Positions 1 to 6,362 of a stretch of DNA of 64,000 nucleotides are shown piece by piece; positions within the stretch are counted from its first letter, which is position 1; each line of letters starts with the position of its first letter. Made by a program: the position numbers and the translations under genes. The DNA comes from Blepharisma stoltei ATCC 30299 (Eukaryota > Protista > Ciliophora): NCBI GenBank assembly GCA_965603825.1, contig CBFDEM010000036.1, positions 620,001 to 684,000 of the forward strand. Direction: 5' to 3'. A model generated the notes under the pieces. It saw only the letters and a program-made list of their open reading frames with translations. It did not search any database and was not told the origin of the DNA.

Positions 1-1028
1 CACTCTCCAAGCTGCTAGGGAACTTTTTCGCTTTGTTCGTTCTGTTCGTCATATCATTCATTTACTACAACGTAGTTCATACATTTCATGACAGATATAG
101 AGGTAATTTTTATTTAGAACCCAAAATCTTTTTATTTTTGTTCATTTTCCACTACTTATTATTTATGCTGCTTTGATGCTTCTTCAGAGCAATGCTAACT
201 GACCCAGGAGTTGTCCCACCGCTATGAGGGTTCTACATGGGTGACTCAGAGCAAAAAAGAAGACGCTACTGTTTAATGTGCCATGTTTTCAAGCCAGAAA
301 GATCTCATCACTGTTCAGCCTGCAACCGCTGTGTATTGAACATGGATCACCACTGCCGTAATGTTTAGTCAGCTTGGATCAATAACTGTGTGGGATTTTA
401 CAATCGCAAATTTTTCATTTTGCTGTTGGTCTATGTTTTGATTTCAACGACCCTAATCACTATTACTCTCTTTCCAACAGTATATGCAAGCGTAAAACAA
501 ATCATTGAAAAAAGAGATATTTATGCGTATAAAGAGGCGGCCTTGTTCTCAGCTTACCTATTGAATTGCTTGCTGAATGGGGTTATGTTCATGTTTCTCA
601 AGTTTCATATCAAACTGATTTTTACAAACATCACCACTATTGAGAACATGGATAAGCAAAATCTTCCGAATTTAATCGTATATAACAAAGGCTACAAGAG
701 AAACTGGATTCAAGTCTTTGGAAGAAATCCTTGACTTTGGCCATTCCCGATGACTGGGAGATCAGGGAAGCCAGTCGGCGACGGAGTTATATGGAATGAC
801 GAAGTAGTACAGAACTTTGATGAAGAGATCCCTGCAAATGAAAATGAAGCAAGAAGGAGCTCAAGGCTCACCGGATCTGGAGTGGCGGCTAGCCGTGAGA
901 GATTAGCTTCACCAGTTAGGCAGGGAAATAGTTTAGAAGGAACTCGCAAAGAATTTGAAAGCACTTTGGATTCTTCGTCAAGGGTCAAAGCTGACTCGCA
1001 TCATGTAGGATTACTCGTAAGTCCATAG
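1..1028 (+). CDS. DHHC palmitoyltransferase (5' partial)
   Basis: Motifs TDPG, Cxx[31 protein letters not shown] and TTIE. 15-nt introns at 103-117 and 358-372; the second restores DHHC-P-W. In-frame TGAs read as W. Stop TAG at 1026-1028. Confidence 0.95.
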
Positions 1029-1034
1029 AATTAA

Positions 1035-1862
1035 TTAAGGATTAAGGGTAGCTAGCTCTACATCTTTTGCTTCTTTTTCTTCAGATCTCGATCTTCCAGA
1101 GCTCACCGCGAAACTTAGCATAAACCCTCTGAAAAACTGGCAAAAGATCGGCGGTAAAAAGATCGAAATTGTGACTAAAATCCATTCACATATGGCTTCA
1201 GCGTTTTCGTTTATAAACGCATTGGAGCTGGTTGAGTATGCCCAATTCCATTCAATAAGAGTTATTAGCGATAAAAATGCAAAGAGTCCTAAAAACAGAG
1301 TCAAAATGAAGAACCAGCGCCTCTCTTGGACATTGAAAGTGCTGCGTGATTTCAATATCAAAGAGTAAACCAGAGATCCCCAAGCGAGATTGACAAGCAC
1401 AAAGCAGACTGATAAAAAGCTATAAACCGGCTCAAAGGGAATTATGTGTACACTGTTAACTTCATCTGTGAGGCTGATAAAAGGTAATGTAATGCACGAA
1501 ATCACTCCTAAATACAGAAGAGCAAGTCTTTTTCAATCTGGTAAGGATGATCCAAAATGGTAATAAGCTCCTGTATACATTAGAACAAGGACAAGTGCAA
1601 AAAATGTGCAAGAAACAATGAAGATCCTGTCATGTCCTCTAAAGCAGCCAATATAAGTCAGTGTAGGTAAAAAAGTGGAGCAAGAAAAATTAGTCAAGCA
1701 AGCTAGAAGCAAATTTGCATAAACCAAAATCGTCATGAGACCGGAAAACCAAAACATAATTTTGGGGATATTCATTGAGTATATTGATCTTCCTTCTTTT
1801 TGTCTGTAGATGAATACTGGAAGTGAAAATGATTGTCGAAATTCTTTATCGTTGCCTTCCAT
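1035..1862 (-). CDS. Multi-pass membrane protein, probably Frag1/DRAM/Sfk1 family
   Basis: ORFs 1533-1862 and 1035-1505 are in one frame joined by TGA (PD-W-KRLALL). About 6 TM segments; LPTLTYIGC after TM1 and CEW in the last TM resemble the family. Confidence 0.65.
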
Positions 1863-2323
1863 AATTTTATAAGTTTAAAAGAATTTCTGAGAGATAGATA
1901 TATAAATAAAGAGAATTTAAAAATAAAAGAAATTAATCCAGTCTTTTTCTACCTTCTGGCAAAAAGGGTTTCTAGATTAATAAAAATCTTTTCCAATTTC
2001 TGAGTTATGCATTGCCATGACAAAATTAAAAACATATATATTTTTTATTGTTGAAAATTGGATCATCAGTCATTCAGCAAGATTTTCAGGCTATATGATA
2101 GAAATATAATTATAAACTATTTTTCAAGTTTAATTAATTGTTTAAAGTTTAAAATATTTAAAAAAAATTAAAGTGAGCGTTTCTGATTATTTGTATTTTT
2201 ATTAATTCAATTTAAAGTTGTTTCATGATCATTTTTCTTGGATAAGAAAGTTTATTTCCTATTATACTTTTGTCTCAAGTCAAATTAAAAGCTCCATTAT
2301 TTTACAATTAGAACTTGTATTAA

Positions 2324-4519
2324 ATGGGTTGTGGAATCTCAAAAAAAGCTTTGAAAGACGTAAGCCCTGCAAAGCCTCATCAAGAAGAAGTCAAATTATC
2401 ACATAATACAGGCTCCTCTAACACTCCCGCAAACAAAAAGACTGAACCTTCTGCAGCTGGACCTCAAAACAAGACAACCCCATCTGTAACTTCCTCAAAA
2501 TCAAACCCTATCAGTCCTCAAGTAAAAGCTCAAGAACCTCAGCAAAAATCTGCGAAAGAAGAAAAACCGCTGGAACCAGCTAAAAAGGCTGATCCTTCCC
2601 CTTCCCCTCAAAAAGCCCGTGAAAATCCCAAAGTACCACTCCCAGAAAATAGCCCAGAACCACAAAAAAAAACTCAAGAAATTCCAAAACCTGAATCCAA
2701 AGAACCCCATAATGAACCTGAAAAGCAAATCAAAGAGCCTGAGTTAGCTGCACAACCAGTTTCAAAGCACTCAAAAAATAAAGAAGAAAATAAGCTTCCT
2801 GCAGAAGGCCAAGCTGGAGGCCACGCAGGAACACTTATTTTTGAAGGTAATAAGCTACTAAAGAAGGCTAAAAAAGGAGAATTTGACTTCTTTGAATGAC
2901 TTTACAGCGCGTCTCAAAACGATCCTTTAATGATTGAGATGAGAAAGTATGCGCCTCAGTATTATGGAGCAGAGGAAAGGAACGGAGAAAGATATATCTC
3001 AATGGAAAACCTATTAACAGACTATCTAAATCCAAGTATCATGGATTGCAAGCTGGGAAGAATTACATGGACTCCTCACCATACAGAAGAGACCAAAAAG
3101 AACCAAGAAGCTAAAAATAAAGGGACAACGACAGGATCTTTGGGGTTCAGGATTTCTGGAGTTGTAGTAAAAGATGAAGAAGGCAAGAAAGTTGAATCCT
3201 GGGCCAAAAATGAAGGGTTTTTTGGAATCAATGAAAATAACATCCATGAACAATTCGCTAAAATAGTGACTAGCAAGGGAGAAGTTAATAAGGACGCAAT
3301 TGAAGCATTTATTGAGGGGACCAAAAGAATTTTGGATTGGTTTCAAAGACAAAAAGTAAAGCACTTTGTGGCAAGCTCAGTGTTTTATGTATGCGGTAAA
3401 AACAAAAAATACCAGGTAAGATATATTGATTTTGCTCATGCTATGGATGCGAATGGAGTAGAAGATGCCAATGTAATCGAAGGCTTACAAAATGTGATCA
3501 AAATATGGGAAAGATTAAGAGGACCGGCTGCTCAAGAGGCAACCGATATAGTTGCTGGGCACAAAGATAGGTTTATTTTTAGAGGTGATAAATTATTAAA
3601 AGCAACAAGCAAAAATGAAATTGACTTTTACAAAGAAGTCTATAACGAGAATTGCCATGATCAACAATTGATTGAGCTGAGAAAATTCCTTCCGAAGTTC
3701 TATGGAGTGGAAGCTATTTCAAACAAAAATTATATTGTCATCGAAAATTTGTTATTCCAGTGCCACAATCCAAGCATTTTAGATTGCAAAATCGGGAAAA
3801 TCACATGGGCACCGACACATAGTATTGAAAAGCAGCGAAGGAAGCAAAATAAAGCTGTAACTTCTACCTCTGGCACGCTTAGCTGGAAGATTTCAGGGAT
3901 TTTGGTTAGGAATGGAGAAGCGATTGCAGAAGCCTGAAATAAAGACCAAGGATATTCTCACGTAAATCAAGATAATGCATTTGAGCAGCTTGCCAAATTA
4001 GCTAGAAAAGAGGATTCTTACTGCAAGGAAATCTTAAATTCTCTTCTTTCTGAAACTCAGAGCCTCAGAGATTGATTCAAAGCTCAACACTCAAAACTAT
4101 TCTTCACAAGCTCAGTGCTTTATGTTGTGAGTCCTCACAAAATCCAAGTGAAATTAATTGATTTTGAGTACATTTTCAATTCTTCAGGAAAGCCAGATAA
4201 CAGTAATTTTTATTTAGATTGCATCAAAGGATTAACAAATCTCGCAGAAAGCTGAAATAGAGCCATCCTTTTTCATCAGCCAAGACTAAGGCCATGCCGA
4301 AGCCCTTATGAAGTAAATCTCGAGCAATCAAGGCCATATTATTACTGTGACTGTGGAAGATCTAAAAAGCAGCCATTCTGCGATGGTTCACACCAAGGCA
4401 CTCAATTTCTGCCTGTCGGTTTTATGGCAGCAGAAACGAAAACCTACTATTTGTGTGGGTGCAAGCATACTAAGAATAAGCCATTCTGTGATGGAACTCA
4501 CAACACTATAGAGTGGTAA
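2324..4519 (+). CDS. N-acylated tandem inositol polyphosphate kinase (2x IPK) with C-terminal double CDGSH Fe-S domain
   Basis: Single frame through TGAs at 2897, 3935 and two more. MGCG N-terminus. IPK motifs occur twice (GGH/AGH; PSIMDCKLG/PSILDCKIG; SSV; IDF). 15-nt intron at 4203-4217. CDCGRSKKQPFCDGSH and CGCKHTKNKPFCDGTH precede TAA at 4517-4519. Confidence 0.85.
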
Positions 4520-4595: not shown

Positions 4596-6059
4596 TTATT
4601 CTTGCATCTTTTTTAGGTCAGATGCAATAAAGAAGGTAGCTCCAGTGATCTCCTTAAGCTTATCTAAAGTGATATCTGAAGCGATCTCTACCAGAGTCAT
4701 CCCAGTATCTCTTCTGAACTCAAACACTCCGCACTCAGTAACGAGCATCCTTACAACTTTTTTGCCTGTGAGTGGTAGAGAGCACTTTTTGAGAATCTTA
4801 GGAGCGCCTTTTGATGTATGCTCCATGCAAACGATGCATTTTGAGTGGCTGTCAACGAGGTCCATGGCACCTCCCATGCCCTTGACCATTTTGCCAGGGA
4901 CAATCCAGTTAGCAAGATCACCATCTTGCGAAACTTGAAGTCCACCAAGGATGGTTAGATCAAGATGGTCACCTCGAACTATGGCAAAGCTCATGCTACT
5001 GTGGAAAACAGAAGAGCCTGTTGCCATTGTAATGGTTTCTTTGCCAGCATTGATTACGTCAGGGTCCTGCTCGCCTGATTTAGGATATGGCCCAATCCCT
5101 AAAAGTCCGTTTTCTCCATGCAAGACGATTTTAATGTCTTTTGGCAAATAGTTTGGAACCATTGTCGGCATGCCAATACCTAGATTTACATACATCCCAT
5201 CCTTTATTTCTTTGGAAACTCTTTTAGCAATCCTTTCTCTCTTCCTAATCTGCTCTGGAGTTCCAGGAAGCTGTATTTTATCACCAGTATTAAGGGCAAG
5301 CCTTTCAATTGGTTTTTCGAAATATTCTCCTTTTACAAGCCTCTGAACAAAAATCCCAGGAGTGTGAATCTGGTCTGGGTCAAGAGAGCCAGCTGGGACT
5401 ATTTCTTCCACTTCTGCAATAGTTATTTTGGAAGCCCCTGCAATATCAGGGTTGAAATTTCTTGCTGTTTTTCTATAGATTAGGTTTCCTTCAGTATCTG
5501 CTTTCCATGCCTTGATGAGCCCAACATCTCCTTTGAGAGCTCTCTCAAGCAAGTATTTTTTACCTCCCCAAATCCTTACTTCTCTTGGGGCAGATACTTT
5601 TTCGACTGTTTTTCCGCCTGGGCCGAATTTCATTGGGAATCCGCCTTCTTCAACGAGACTGCCAGCTCCAGTGTGGGTATAAAATGCAGAAATTCCGCAA
5701 GCTCCTGCTCTTAGCCTTTCGGCTAAGGACCCTTGAGGAATTAAATCAAGCTCAATTTCACCATTTAAATACTGATTTTCCAATGTTTCATTTCCCCCTA
5801 AATATGAACAATGGATACTCGATGCCATTTTGTCCTTGATCAGAAGTCCAGGTCCAAATTCATTGGTCCCTGAAGTGTTAGTGATTAGTTTAAGGTTATT
5901 GATTTTCAAGTGATGGATCGCCCTCAGTAAATTTTCAGGAACTCCGCATAATCCGAACCCAGAAATCATTAAGGCCATCCCACTTTTGAGATCAGCCACG
6001 GCCTCAGCAGACGAGTTAAATATCTTAGTAGCAAAGAATCTCCTTGATGTTGTGAACAT
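4596..6059 (-). CDS. OXCT1: Succinyl-CoA:3-oxoacid CoA-transferase (SCOT), mitochondrial
   Basis: GFGLCGVPENL, QGSLAERLRAG, YVNLGIGMP, GENG and KGMGGAMDLV. Likely start MFTTSRRFF resembles a mitochondrial presequence. Confidence 0.93.
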   Translation of the reverse strand: MFTTSRRFFATKIFNSSAEAVADLKSGMALMISGFGLCGVPENLLRAIHHLKINNLKLITNTSGTNEFGPGLLIKDKMASSIHCSYLGGNETLENQYLNGEIELDLIPQGSLAERLRAGACGISAFYTHTGAGSLVEEGGFPMKFGPGGKTVEKVSAPREVRIWGGKKYLLERALKGDVGLIKAWKADTEGNLIYRKTARNFNPDIAGASKITIAEVEEIVPAGSLDPDQIHTPGIFVQRLVKGEYFEKPIERLALNTGDKIQLPGTPEQIRKRERIAKRVSKEIKDGMYVNLGIGMPTMVPNYLPKDIKIVLHGENGLLGIGPYPKSGEQDPDVINAGKETITMATGSSVFHSSMSFAIVRGDHLDLTILGGLQVSQDGDLANWIVPGKMVKGMGGAMDLVDSHSKCIVCMEHTSKGAPKILKKCSLPLTGKKVVRMLVTECGVFEFRRDTGMTLVEIASDITLDKLKEITGATFFIASDLKKMQE

Positions 6060-6362
6060 TAGCTTAATAAATTTATATCTAAACAATTGTGGATTGTAAA
6101 ATGTGGGTAATTTAAAGCCATTAAATAATTCCACATCATTTTTCAAAGATATAGCTAGCTAAATTATCAACTAAAATCTTGTAGTTTCACCAAAGGCAAT
6201 TTTAAAATTTTACTGACTGCTATTTAATAAATATGAAATAAAATTTGACTTTTAGCATGCTTAATTGTAATAAGAAGAAAAATAGTATTAAATTGAACGA
6301 CAGCAATAAAAACTTGCAGAGATAAGGGATTTATTTAAATTAGTTTATAATTCTGATATAGG

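Follow-up and report, generated by a model that had tools for sequence, protein, structure and literature searches.

Tandem inositol-polyphosphate kinase domains fused to a double-CDGSH module in one gene of the ciliate Blepharisma stoltei

A single gene read with UGA as tryptophan

The window analysed here is a 64,000-nucleotide stretch of the Blepharisma stoltei ATCC 30299 genome (contig CBFDEM010000036.1, positions 620,001 to 684,000 of the forward strand), and all coordinates count from its first nucleotide. Between positions 2324 and 4519 it carries one protein-coding gene, which encodes one 726-aa protein. The first-pass annotation had assembled this protein from three open reading frame fragments and an unannotated tail, by reading TGA as tryptophan and removing a 15-nt intron. 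Our analysis upheld that proposal, as the parts lie in a single frame and the TGA codons fall at tryptophan columns of the alignment. The comparison drew on the B. stoltei paralogue C9 (CAG9313049.1 / A0AAU9IPF9, also P0159; 618 aa), on L015, a syntenic orthologue from another species that reads TGA as tryptophan (Logan assembly), and on L016 / P0151, a JGI transcript contig from a sister Blepharisma. The gene model has the following features.

2324–4519, forward strand: whole gene, 726-aa protein, single frame (TGA as Trp, one 15-nt intron), from alignment with orthologue and paralogue
2897–2899, forward strand: in-frame TGA read as Trp (FFE-W-LYS); W in L015 at the aligned column
3935–3937, forward strand: in-frame TGA read as Trp; W at the aligned column in domain 1, the C9 paralogue and L015
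4073–4075, forward strand: in-frame TGA read as Trp; W in 4/4 compared proteins
4203–4217, forward strand: 15-nt intron GTAATTTTTATTTAG, phase 1, in frame and stop-free; position shared by relatives, spliced in L016
4253–4255, forward strand: in-frame TGA read as Trp, the final break ahead of the CDGSH tail; W (TGG) in C9, L015 and C3

The start is fixed at the ATG at 2324 by an in-frame TAA directly upstream, at 2321, and the gene stops at a TAA (4517–4519). In-frame TAA and TAG are absent over 726 codons of AT-rich DNA, for which we roughly estimate a chance of ~1e-15. UGA encodes tryptophan in B. stoltei (PMC9942806), and the genome combines this code with introns of 15/16 bp. The GTAA..TAG 15-mer at 4203–4217 occupies an identical column in genomic DNA of C9, L015 and Stentor and is cleanly missing from the transcript contig L016; its removal lets domains 1 and 2 align without gaps. 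In L015 the intron lies at the matching place and contains a TAA. No in-frame start precedes the first CDGSH motif and, in the alignment, the relatives share no conserved methionine there; the nearby ATG noted in the first-pass annotation is indeed out of frame, but lies at 4294 rather than 4293. We infer transcript continuity across 2324–4519 from the paralogue's spliced transcript, from conservation and from selection.

The expectation that the fusion would escape a standard-code annotation proved true of standard-code ORF callers, which cut the MMETSP ORF P0002 at a TGA and the Logan ORF P0001 within the intron, but not of the public B. stoltei annotation, which fuses the C9 paralogue. ORF callers that apply the wrong code, or ignore 15-nt introns, conceal such fusions in heterotrich data.

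Domains of the predicted protein

The encoded protein runs from an acylation-type start through a low-complexity linker into two inositol-polyphosphate kinase (IPK) domains and a double-CDGSH tail.

2324–2347, forward strand: MGCGISKK, a start of the N-myristoylation (Gly2)/S-palmitoylation (Cys3) type with basic residues after it; start fixed by the TAA at 2321, MGC conserved
2348–2806, forward strand: low-complexity linker rich in P, K, E and S, about 155 aa; from composition, no Pfam match
2807–3532, forward strand: IPK domain 1 (QAGGH, LLK, ENLL, PSIMDCKLG, ASSVFYV, IDFAH); PF03770 profile positions 1–189/190, human IPMK in the PDB at 8.6e-27
2810–2824, 3032–3058, 3371–3391 and 3425–3439, forward strand: domain 1 motifs QAGGH, PSIMDCKLG, ASSVFYV and IDFAH, in that order
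3533–4279, forward strand: IPK domain 2 (VAGH, LLK, ENLL, PSILDCKIG, TSSVLYV, IDFEY); second Pfam stretch plus the piece 4076–4252, contains the intron
3551–3562, 3770–3796, 4106–4126 and 4157–4171, forward strand: domain 2 motifs VAGH, PSILDCKIG, TSSVLYV and IDFEY, in that order
4280–4345, forward strand: junction from the last IPK2 helix to the CDGSH module, stop-free, no conserved start codon
4292–4510, forward strand: double-CDGSH (CISD3/MiNT-type) module; PDB 3TBN at 9.2e-24, human CISD3 6AVJ at 1.4e-17, and Pfam
4346–4393, forward strand: CDGSH motif 1, CxCxxSxxxPxCDGSH (3 Cys + 1 His), from sequence
4454–4501, forward strand: CDGSH motif 2, CxCxxTxxxPxCDGTH (3 Cys + 1 His), from sequence

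N-myristoylation follows the pattern G-{EDRKHPFYW}-x(2)-[STAGCN]-{P} (PROSITE PS00008). The GCGISK of the 726-aa protein fits it, with Cys3 for palmitate, and the MGC start is kept in relatives (GCGGSK in C9, GCGISS in L015, GCCSGR / GCGGSK in Stentor-type homologues), in line with the earlier reading of the MGCG start as a lipid signal. An N-myristoyltransferase gene is also present in the genome (PF01233, 1.9e-69, contig C26:67397–67873). We strongly expect myristate and palmitate to anchor the protein to a membrane on its cytosolic side. The linker, earlier put at ~160 aa of P, E and K, is there, but measures about 155 aa and is rich in serine as well (P 17%, K 16%, E 12%, S 11%). Its length varies among relatives, its identity to the orthologue is 36%, and the equivalent region of an AlphaFold model of the C9 paralogue has pLDDT <50.

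Pfam and PDB searches were run on stop-free pieces, while the joined, spliced model was used for alignment, trees, substitution counts and an in-house HMM. Both profiles proposed for checking the architecture scored above their gathering thresholds on these pieces, and all the motifs earlier assigned to two IPK domains are present. PF03770 (IPK) matched at 4.8e-50, with 170.6 bits against a gathering score of 22.2, in two stretches within 2900–3934. The C-terminal fragment 4076–4252 on its own reached 15.2 bits, domain 2 being cut by a UGA, and with the joined model the in-house HMM gave 1.4e-86 for domain 1 and 5e-73 for domain 2. The PDB matches of the IPK part were human IPMK (8.6e-27), EhIP6KA (5.7e-23) and IP3K (3e-10 or weaker), and in a domain tree the heterotrich IPKs form a clade separate from the named IPMK, IP6K and IP3K enzymes. 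Domain 2 is 38% identical to domain 1, and LLK, ENLL, SS(V) and IDF are retained in both; where domain 1 has IDFAH, domain 2 has IDFEY, so that the Asp is kept and the His lost. Both domains very probably retain IPMK/IP6K-like catalytic motifs. IPK2 of this lineage may not be a conventional kinase, given its faster evolution, IDFEY for IDFAH and SWK for GFR. A profile search of the genome for IP5 2-kinase (PF06090) gave no match, and neither did its control; this blank, weak as a sign of absence, agrees with the reported loss of IPPK in alveolates (PMC8024741).

The tail had been described as two CISD3/MiNT-type CDGSH motifs at 4346–4501, and both are found there: PF09360 (zf-CDGSH) matched at 1.2e-20, with 73.9 bits against a gathering score of 29.5, in two stretches within 4256–4516, and both motifs fit C-X-C-X2-(S/T)-X3-P-X-C-D-G-(S/A/T)-H at every position. 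The phmmer matches to 6AVJ (1.4e-17) and 3TBN (9.2e-24) span the whole module, and 8/8 cluster ligands are conserved in the aligned C9 paralogue and L015. With motif starts 36 residues apart, two motifs in one chain and no transmembrane helix, the tail has the hallmarks of a class II NEET protein, a type in which the paired motifs make up a pseudo-dimer. It does not share the free-standing, mitochondrial matrix character of CISD3/MiNT, as the module is C-terminal in a 726-aa protein that has an acylation signal instead of a presequence. The module is a relative of CISD3, probably similar to it in its working, and not its orthologue. Its likeness in sequence strongly suggests a CISD3/MiNT-like fold, predicted to carry two 3Cys-1His [2Fe-2S] clusters.

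The AlphaFold model of the C9 paralogue P0159 also served as a stand-in for the structure of the 726-aa protein. In Foldseek comparisons its IPK domains gave TMt values of 0.85–0.88 to human IPMK (0.87 among them), with pLDDT >=90 for IPK2, and its tail 0.59–0.63 to CISD3/3TBN-type structures (0.63 to 3TBN). The pTM of 0.54 and the pLDDT <50 of the second CDGSH motif mean that no interface between IPK2 and the CDGSH module can be claimed from this model.

Conservation and spread of the fusion

The C9 paralogue has the same architecture and both Pfam families; A0AAU9IPF9 is annotated only as 'Kinase'. It shares the MGCG start, the linker, the two IPK domains, the intron at the same codon and a double-CDGSH end in (L/I)(D/E)W, with identities of 74% in IPK1, 63% in the CDGSH part and 44% in IPK2. 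The 726-aa gene differs from it in its four UGA-Trp codons, its longer linker (about 155 aa against about 45 aa) and a far more diverged IPK2 with IDFEY in place of IDFAH. In the domain tree this IPK2 pairs only with that of the orthologue L015, which likewise has an equal architecture. In transcripts, L016 carries IPK2 and both CDGSH motifs in one ORF with the 15-nt intron cleanly deleted, showing that in the sister-species counterpart of the C9 paralogue a single spliced mRNA carries the architecture, while MMETSP Transcript_17512 (P0002) is 93% identical to the 726-aa protein across the IPK1–IPK2 boundary.

Substitution counts against the orthologue showed saturated synonymous sites (pS 0.8–0.97) and pN values of 0.16 for the CDGSH part, 0.14 for IPK1 (76% aa identity) and 0.33 for IPK2, whose rate of evolution is two to three times that of IPK1. 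Across the junction at 4280–4345, pN/pS is about 0.5 and dN/dS about 0.3. By these counts, purifying selection acts on the CDGSH tail as read in this frame. The fusion is both real and conserved.

The architecture is rare, and our searches met with it in Blepharisma alone: database searches returned no protein outside the genus that combines IPK and CDGSH, and the literature searched contained no description of the combination. The full-length 726-aa protein was itself not among the database matches; it may be missing there, withheld, or grouped under a short representative. A look for orthologues in Stentor had been suggested, and homologues do exist there, but with neither a second IPK domain nor a CDGSH tail. 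The closest matches outside Blepharisma are Stentor coeruleus SteCoe_15110 and its relatives, at 55–61% identity. Like the 726-aa protein, the Stentor MGC-IPK has an MGC start, a charged linker and a 15-nt intron at the same position; it differs in having a single IPK domain, ending in KRLL right after the kinase, with no CDGSH within 2.5 kb. Stentor thus has the anchor and one kinase, Blepharisma C3 two kinases, and C9 and the present gene (C36) the anchor, two kinases and the Fe-S tail, a series that shows the route by which the architecture was assembled.

The history of the tail is less clear. In a CDGSH tree the fused tails fall with Blepharisma's own CDGSH genes into one weakly supported clade (support 84/92); the sequence is too short for the tree to decide their origin. 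A search with the tail among proteins of 48–152 aa, a size range that excludes fusions, found free 78–80-aa CDGSH proteins to form a very large family. A metagenome scan with the tail gave matches of up to 66% identity, all of them to CDGSH genes that were free or bacterial; a transcript of the gene's orthologue was not among them. The Blepharisma genome also encodes stand-alone MGC-CDGSHx2 proteins of ~110 aa, C20 (= P0237) and C56, so the tail may serve a purpose separate from kinase control.

Possible working of the fusion and its precedents

NEET clusters are labile, being sensitive to oxidation, acid pH, NO and the supply of iron. We consider the best explanation of the protein as a whole to be a membrane-anchored tandem IPK whose CISD3/MiNT-like tail acts as a sensor in cis, and we give this reading a probability of about 0.6. 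The predicted clusters of the tail would report on redox state, pH, NO and iron; whether they are holo, oxidised or apo would affect the conformation of the neighbouring IPK2 or its stability, and hence the tandem kinase; and redox or iron state would thereby tune the conversion of membrane-proximal InsP3/InsPn to higher inositol (pyro)phosphates. Both the control by redox, iron or pH and the earlier idea of a two-step inositol (pyro)phosphate or phosphoinositide kinase are hypotheses.

Several other readings of the same protein have to be set against this one. Only IPK1 might work as a kinase, with IPK2 a pseudo-kinase or ligand-binding regulatory domain that forms a sensor unit with the tail. 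The higher pN of IPK2 (0.33 against 0.14) and its long branches in the domain tree would suit such a role, as would the loss in L015 of the GH of the N-terminal AGH motif and the lineage's replacement of IDFAH by IDFEY and of GFR by SWK/SYR. Against this, IPK2 keeps the N-lobe Lys (LLK), the ENLL hinge, PxxxDxKxG, SS(V/L) and the Asp of IDF, and is still under purifying selection, and the alignment of PDB matches shows the GFR arginine to be missing in human IPMK too; we regard a single working kinase as a tentative possibility. Alternatively, the tail might be an electron- or cluster-transfer or docking module at the kinase's membrane patch that does not regulate the kinase or, in reverse, locally made iron-chelating inositol polyphosphates might serve the Fe-S module. 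C20 and C56, whose very similar modules share the weakly supported clade with the fused tails, and the tailless Stentor MGC-IPK together indicate that kinase and CDGSH functions can exist apart at membranes, a Rosetta-stone pattern. But the CDGSH module is tethered just ~10–25 residues from the last IPK2 helix, and this very short, length-conserved linker fits direct coupling more readily than a passive tether; we consider mere co-localisation unlikely.

It might also be argued that the region yields two products, with translation ending at UGA 4253 (or the mRNA earlier) and the CDGSH part a small independent gene or untranslated remnant, as its splitting in the standard-code ORF track would suggest. 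That UGA aligns with a TGG-Trp codon in the paralogues and the orthologue, however, and UGA is a tryptophan codon in B. stoltei (PMC9942806). Moreover, motif 1 has neither an upstream in-frame start nor a conserved Met in relatives, purifying selection acts on the tail in this frame, the transcript of the paralogue runs on without a break and public annotation fuses that paralogue, all of which makes two products very improbable. An assembly or annotation artefact joining unrelated neighbours can be practically dismissed, since the parts follow in identical order in three independent sequences (two loci here and the Logan assembly of another species) and in the transcript contig; we found no support for it.

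A more specific extension of the in-cis sensor would make the fusion a cortical transducer from light or oxidants to inositol phosphates in the pigmented, photophobic Blepharisma. Light on blepharismin would generate reactive oxygen and acidify the cytosol, the 3Cys-1His clusters of the anchored tail, labile to pH and oxidants, would be lost or oxidised and the tandem kinase switched, and the InsP3/InsPn pools feeding the photophobic Ca2+ response would be reshaped. Fabczak and colleagues have reportedly linked light, pH and InsP3 in Blepharisma; the literature searched contained nothing relevant on Blepharisma and InsP3. We consider this transducer a long shot.

To our knowledge, the IPMK, IP6K and IP3K enzymes are soluble proteins with a single catalytic domain, and carry no such lipid anchor, no Fe-S domain and no metal-cluster cofactor. 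Human IPMK (PDB 5W2G/6M88) and Entamoeba IP6KA (4O4D) share with the 726-aa protein PF03770, PxxxDxKxG, SSLL-type and IDFAH-type motifs and a catalytic core of ~240 aa, while the tandem IPK domains and CDGSH tail set it apart from the IPMK/IP6K/IP3K enzymes. NEET/CDGSH modules are small iron and redox proteins, either free or tethered to a membrane. CISD3/MiNT (6AVJ) and the type-6 CDGSH protein 3TBN share with the tail two motifs in a ~75-aa chain, eight ligands and the full 16-residue consensus, with ~55% identity to 3TBN. But CISD3 occurs free in the mitochondrial matrix and 3TBN is likewise a free protein, of bacterial origin, whereas the module described here forms the C-terminal domain of a predicted cytosolic, membrane-anchored kinase. 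A bacterial CDGSHx2-Fer2-cyclase-Rieske fusion also came to light, another Fe-S precedent on a signalling enzyme.

Fe-S control of InsP turnover has a functional precedent in S. pombe Asp1 (PPIP5K/Vip1 family), an enzyme that acts in inositol pyrophosphate metabolism and carries a [2Fe-2S] cluster (PMC8038993). Asp1 has an unrelated fold, an ATP-grasp kinase with a histidine-acid-phosphatase-like domain, and its cluster lies in the phosphatase domain, with no CDGSH. This unrelated cluster was the sole partial precedent found for Fe-S/InsP coupling. As the parts are all small and expressible, the hypothesis is easily testable. A selected, conserved fusion of this kind predicts a direct physical coupling of redox, iron or pH state with inositol-phosphate signalling in Blepharisma.

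One conserved, selected ORF carries both kinase domains and the CDGSH pair

The window gene, on contig C36 (window C36:620001-684000), occupies 2324-4519 (+) as one frame of 732 codons closed by a TAA stop at 4517, its sole interruptions being four TGA codons at 2897, 3935, 4073 and 4253. Since an in-frame TAA lies at 2321, ATG 2324 is its earliest possible start. In B. stoltei ATCC 30299, whose macronuclear genome comprises 41 Mbp in 64 telomere-to-telomere contigs, UGA is reassigned to Trp and introns are mostly 15 and 16 bp (PMC9942806). When aligned, all four TGAs fall at Trp columns of a paralogue, orthologue or sister domain; the gene uses 7 TGG and 4 TGA Trp codons. The frame also contains the following element:

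4203-4217, + strand, 15-nt GT..AG element GTAATTTTTATTTAG, phase 1 intron of the window gene

Its removal leaves 726 aa, and the two inositol-polyphosphate kinase domains (IPK1 and IPK2) then align gap-free. A GTAA..TAG 15-mer occupies one common alignment column in a paralogue on contig C9, in a syntenic orthologue (L015) and in a Stentor coeruleus homologue; because the C9 and L015 versions contain an in-frame TAA, they must be spliced out. Exactly these 15 nt are missing from a transcript-type contig. The intron is thus backed by homology, and we regard the gene model as very probably correct. Every motif named in the first-pass annotation was found where it had been placed. The convergent neighbour at 4596-6146 (-) encodes a CoA-transferase (PF01144, 7.5e-108), whose stop is just 76 nt from that of the fusion gene.

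The C9 gene (465.6-467.5 kb, same genome) has the same layout of MGCG start, IPK, IPK, intron and double CDGSH; its genomic model equals public B. stoltei CAG9313049.1 in length and sequence, and both Pfam families are detected in it. This protein (618 aa) is already in UniProt as A0AAU9IPF9, though under the automatic name 'Kinase' alone. In another species that uses in-frame TGA in neighbouring ORFs, L015 (a Logan contig of run SRR24908292) shares upstream synteny with the window (66-83% identity of neighbour genes to window 3-1865) and encodes the same domain layout at 55-60% identity. When the window gene is compared with this orthologue, synonymous change has reached saturation (pS 0.8-0.97); the values for non-synonymous differences are 0.14 for IPK1, 0.33 for IPK2, 0.27 for the junction and 0.16 for the CDGSH module.

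At the RNA level, protein P0151 (JGI contig L016, sample 3300016922) holds IPK2 and both CDGSH motifs within one ORF, with the junction HEDI|NTREG of the spliced C9 gene. P0151-type proteins occur both in JGI and in MMETSP data, where MMETSP1395 corresponds to Blepharisma japonicum; we therefore take L016 to be a transcript from a sister species of B. stoltei. Compared with the genomic C9 gene, L016:1-1845 changes frame between IPK1 and IPK2, probably through an assembly error; a second ORF on its opposite strand (1864-2889) suggests a merger of overlapping transcripts from convergent genes. P0002 (MMETSP Transcript_17512) ends exactly at the UGA; over the stretch from where IPK1 ends into IPK2 it has 93% identity to the window protein, so the window gene's own counterpart is expressed there. 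That the kinase and CDGSH parts are two separate products is very improbable: the window gene has no in-frame start codon before CDGSH motif 1, nor is a Met conserved there among its aligned relatives. An artefact, to be set against a paralogue, an orthologue and a transcript contig with the same order of parts, has a practically negligible probability.

Kinase domains, CDGSH tail and N-terminus

Searches used stop-free pieces of the window gene and folding used the public C9 paralogue; the joined, UGA-read-through, spliced model was handled by scripts only. The two families that the first-pass annotation had named were both matched: PF03770 (IPK) in two stretches within 2900-3934 (E 4.8e-50), with a C-terminal portion of the second domain at 4076-4252, and PF09360 (zf-CDGSH) in two stretches within 4256-4516 (E 1.2e-20). 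IPK1 and IPK2 are 38% identical, and both retain the N-lobe LLK lysine, the ENLL hinge, PxxxDxKxG, SS(V) and the IDF aspartate. The closest solved structures are human IPMK (8.6e-27) and Entamoeba IP6KA (5.7e-23), with IP3K far weaker, matches from which subfamily and substrate are not assignable.

In a domain tree, IPK1 of the window, L015 and C9 formed a starred clade (100/99), and the IPK2 domains of the window and L015 paired (100/99) on longer branches. IPK2 of this lineage has IDFEY and SWK/SYR, with the GH motif gone in L015, and is diverging. A third tandem-IPK gene, on contig C3 (P0160, 495 aa; 300.4-301.7 kb; L014, minus strand), is without MGC start, linker, intron or CDGSH; its two domains lie nearest to one another, a sign of recent duplication or gene conversion. 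In Nyctotherus ovalis the tandem IPK (P0008, transcript, 506 aa) groups as an independent duplication; another independent tandem protein from ciliate-like sources is P0022 (ENA, 508 aa). From these groupings, the tandem arrangement is older than the C36/C9 split, and ciliates have evolved tandem IPKs more than once.

The tail matches the complete 16-residue CDGSH consensus twice and aligns end to end with bacterial 3TBN, also a double-CDGSH protein (9.2e-24, about 55% identity), as well as with human CISD3/MiNT (1.4e-17). At the other end, the N-terminal 191 aa (P 17%, K 16%, E 12%, S 11%) matched no Pfam family. The MGC start, a predicted acylation site, fits the N-myristoylation pattern, plus a Cys suited to palmitate; it is kept in both fusions, L015 and the Stentor homologues, and an N-myristoyltransferase gene is present in the B. 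stoltei genome. The AlphaFold model of the C9 paralogue (P0159; mean pLDDT 76.8, pTM 0.54, domain-domain geometry unreliable) has 54 disordered initial residues and IPK2 at pLDDT above 90; it can be overlaid on human IPMK with TMt 0.87 and on 3TBN with TMt 0.63.

Distribution and assembly of the architecture

The first-pass annotation had considered the combination novel, and in a full-length paralogue query of 5.8 billion clustered proteins PF03770 and PF09360 occurred together in the Blepharisma cluster only. A CDGSH motif was absent from all 150 top-ranked IPK representatives (0/150), our literature search found no paper that relevantly joins these domains, and neither a phylogenetic paper on CDGSH proteins nor a review of the IPK landscape mentions the fusion. 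What is new is the architecture, its component kinds being already known; the window gene is a second, more diverged fusion member beside the C9 paralogue.

The orthologues to be looked for in Stentor exist, with part of the layout: S. coeruleus SteCoe_15110 and related environmental proteins have MGC, a charged linker and the window gene's intron, but a single IPK, ending at KRLL, and no CDGSH; no CDGSH-like sequence lies within 2.5 kb of Stentor-type MGC-IPK genes. The intron occurs at the same codon in L038:2501-3442 (S. coeruleus MPUH01000288.1) and L039:2215-3534 (ENA metagenome scaffold); in L039 the gene caller translated it in frame, adding SKSYL.

At least nine Blepharisma genes encode a double CDGSH, a large family for a ciliate. 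Two encode free proteins of ~110 aa with acylation-type starts (MGCC or MGCF), a charged linker and a module very like the fused tail:

B. stoltei C20:~394.9-395.2 kb (L002:1369-1698), + strand, free MGCC/MGCF double-CDGSH protein
B. stoltei C56:~31.2-31.6 kb (L003:1357-1698), + strand, free MGCC/MGCF double-CDGSH protein

One such free protein has a public but unnamed B. stoltei entry (P0237). About 199 kb past the window, a 181-aa ORF (C36:881.7-884.8 kb; L007:1381-1923, minus strand) weakly matches the RIIa docking domain (PF02197, E 0.0023, under cut-off), with a double CDGSH after it (5.9e-18). The fused tails cluster with Blepharisma's own double-CDGSH genes with moderate support (84/92). 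The simplest history starts from an anchored kinase with one domain, which duplicated internally and afterwards captured a cytosolic double-CDGSH gene; every step would fall after the Stentor split and before the C36/C9 duplication.

A possible in-cis cluster sensor

The protein is strongly predicted to carry two [2Fe-2S] clusters and two cores competent as kinases, and to be anchored to a membrane. NEET clusters are labile to oxidation and acid owing to their His ligand. A double CDGSH is likewise joined to a signalling enzyme in a bacterial-type ORF (L019:3971-5524, metagenome contig LULJ01001959.1; L020 near-identical), a precedent for fusion with the order CDGSHx2-Fer2 (2Fe-2S ferredoxin)-adenylate/guanylate cyclase-Rieske. 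S. pombe Asp1, unrelated to the window protein, is a precedent for a [2Fe-2S] cluster on an inositol pyrophosphate enzyme (PMC8038993).

IPK2 might be a non-catalytic regulatory domain, a rather doubtful idea to be weighed with its divergence and its retained kinase motifs, and one compatible with the other readings. Less likely still, the Fe-S function may be co-localised with the kinase yet independent of it; free acylation-type double-CDGSH proteins exist in the same genome. We tentatively favour, at a probability of about 0.35-0.4, the hypothesis that the clusters of the tail would act in cis as a sensor to the tandem kinase.
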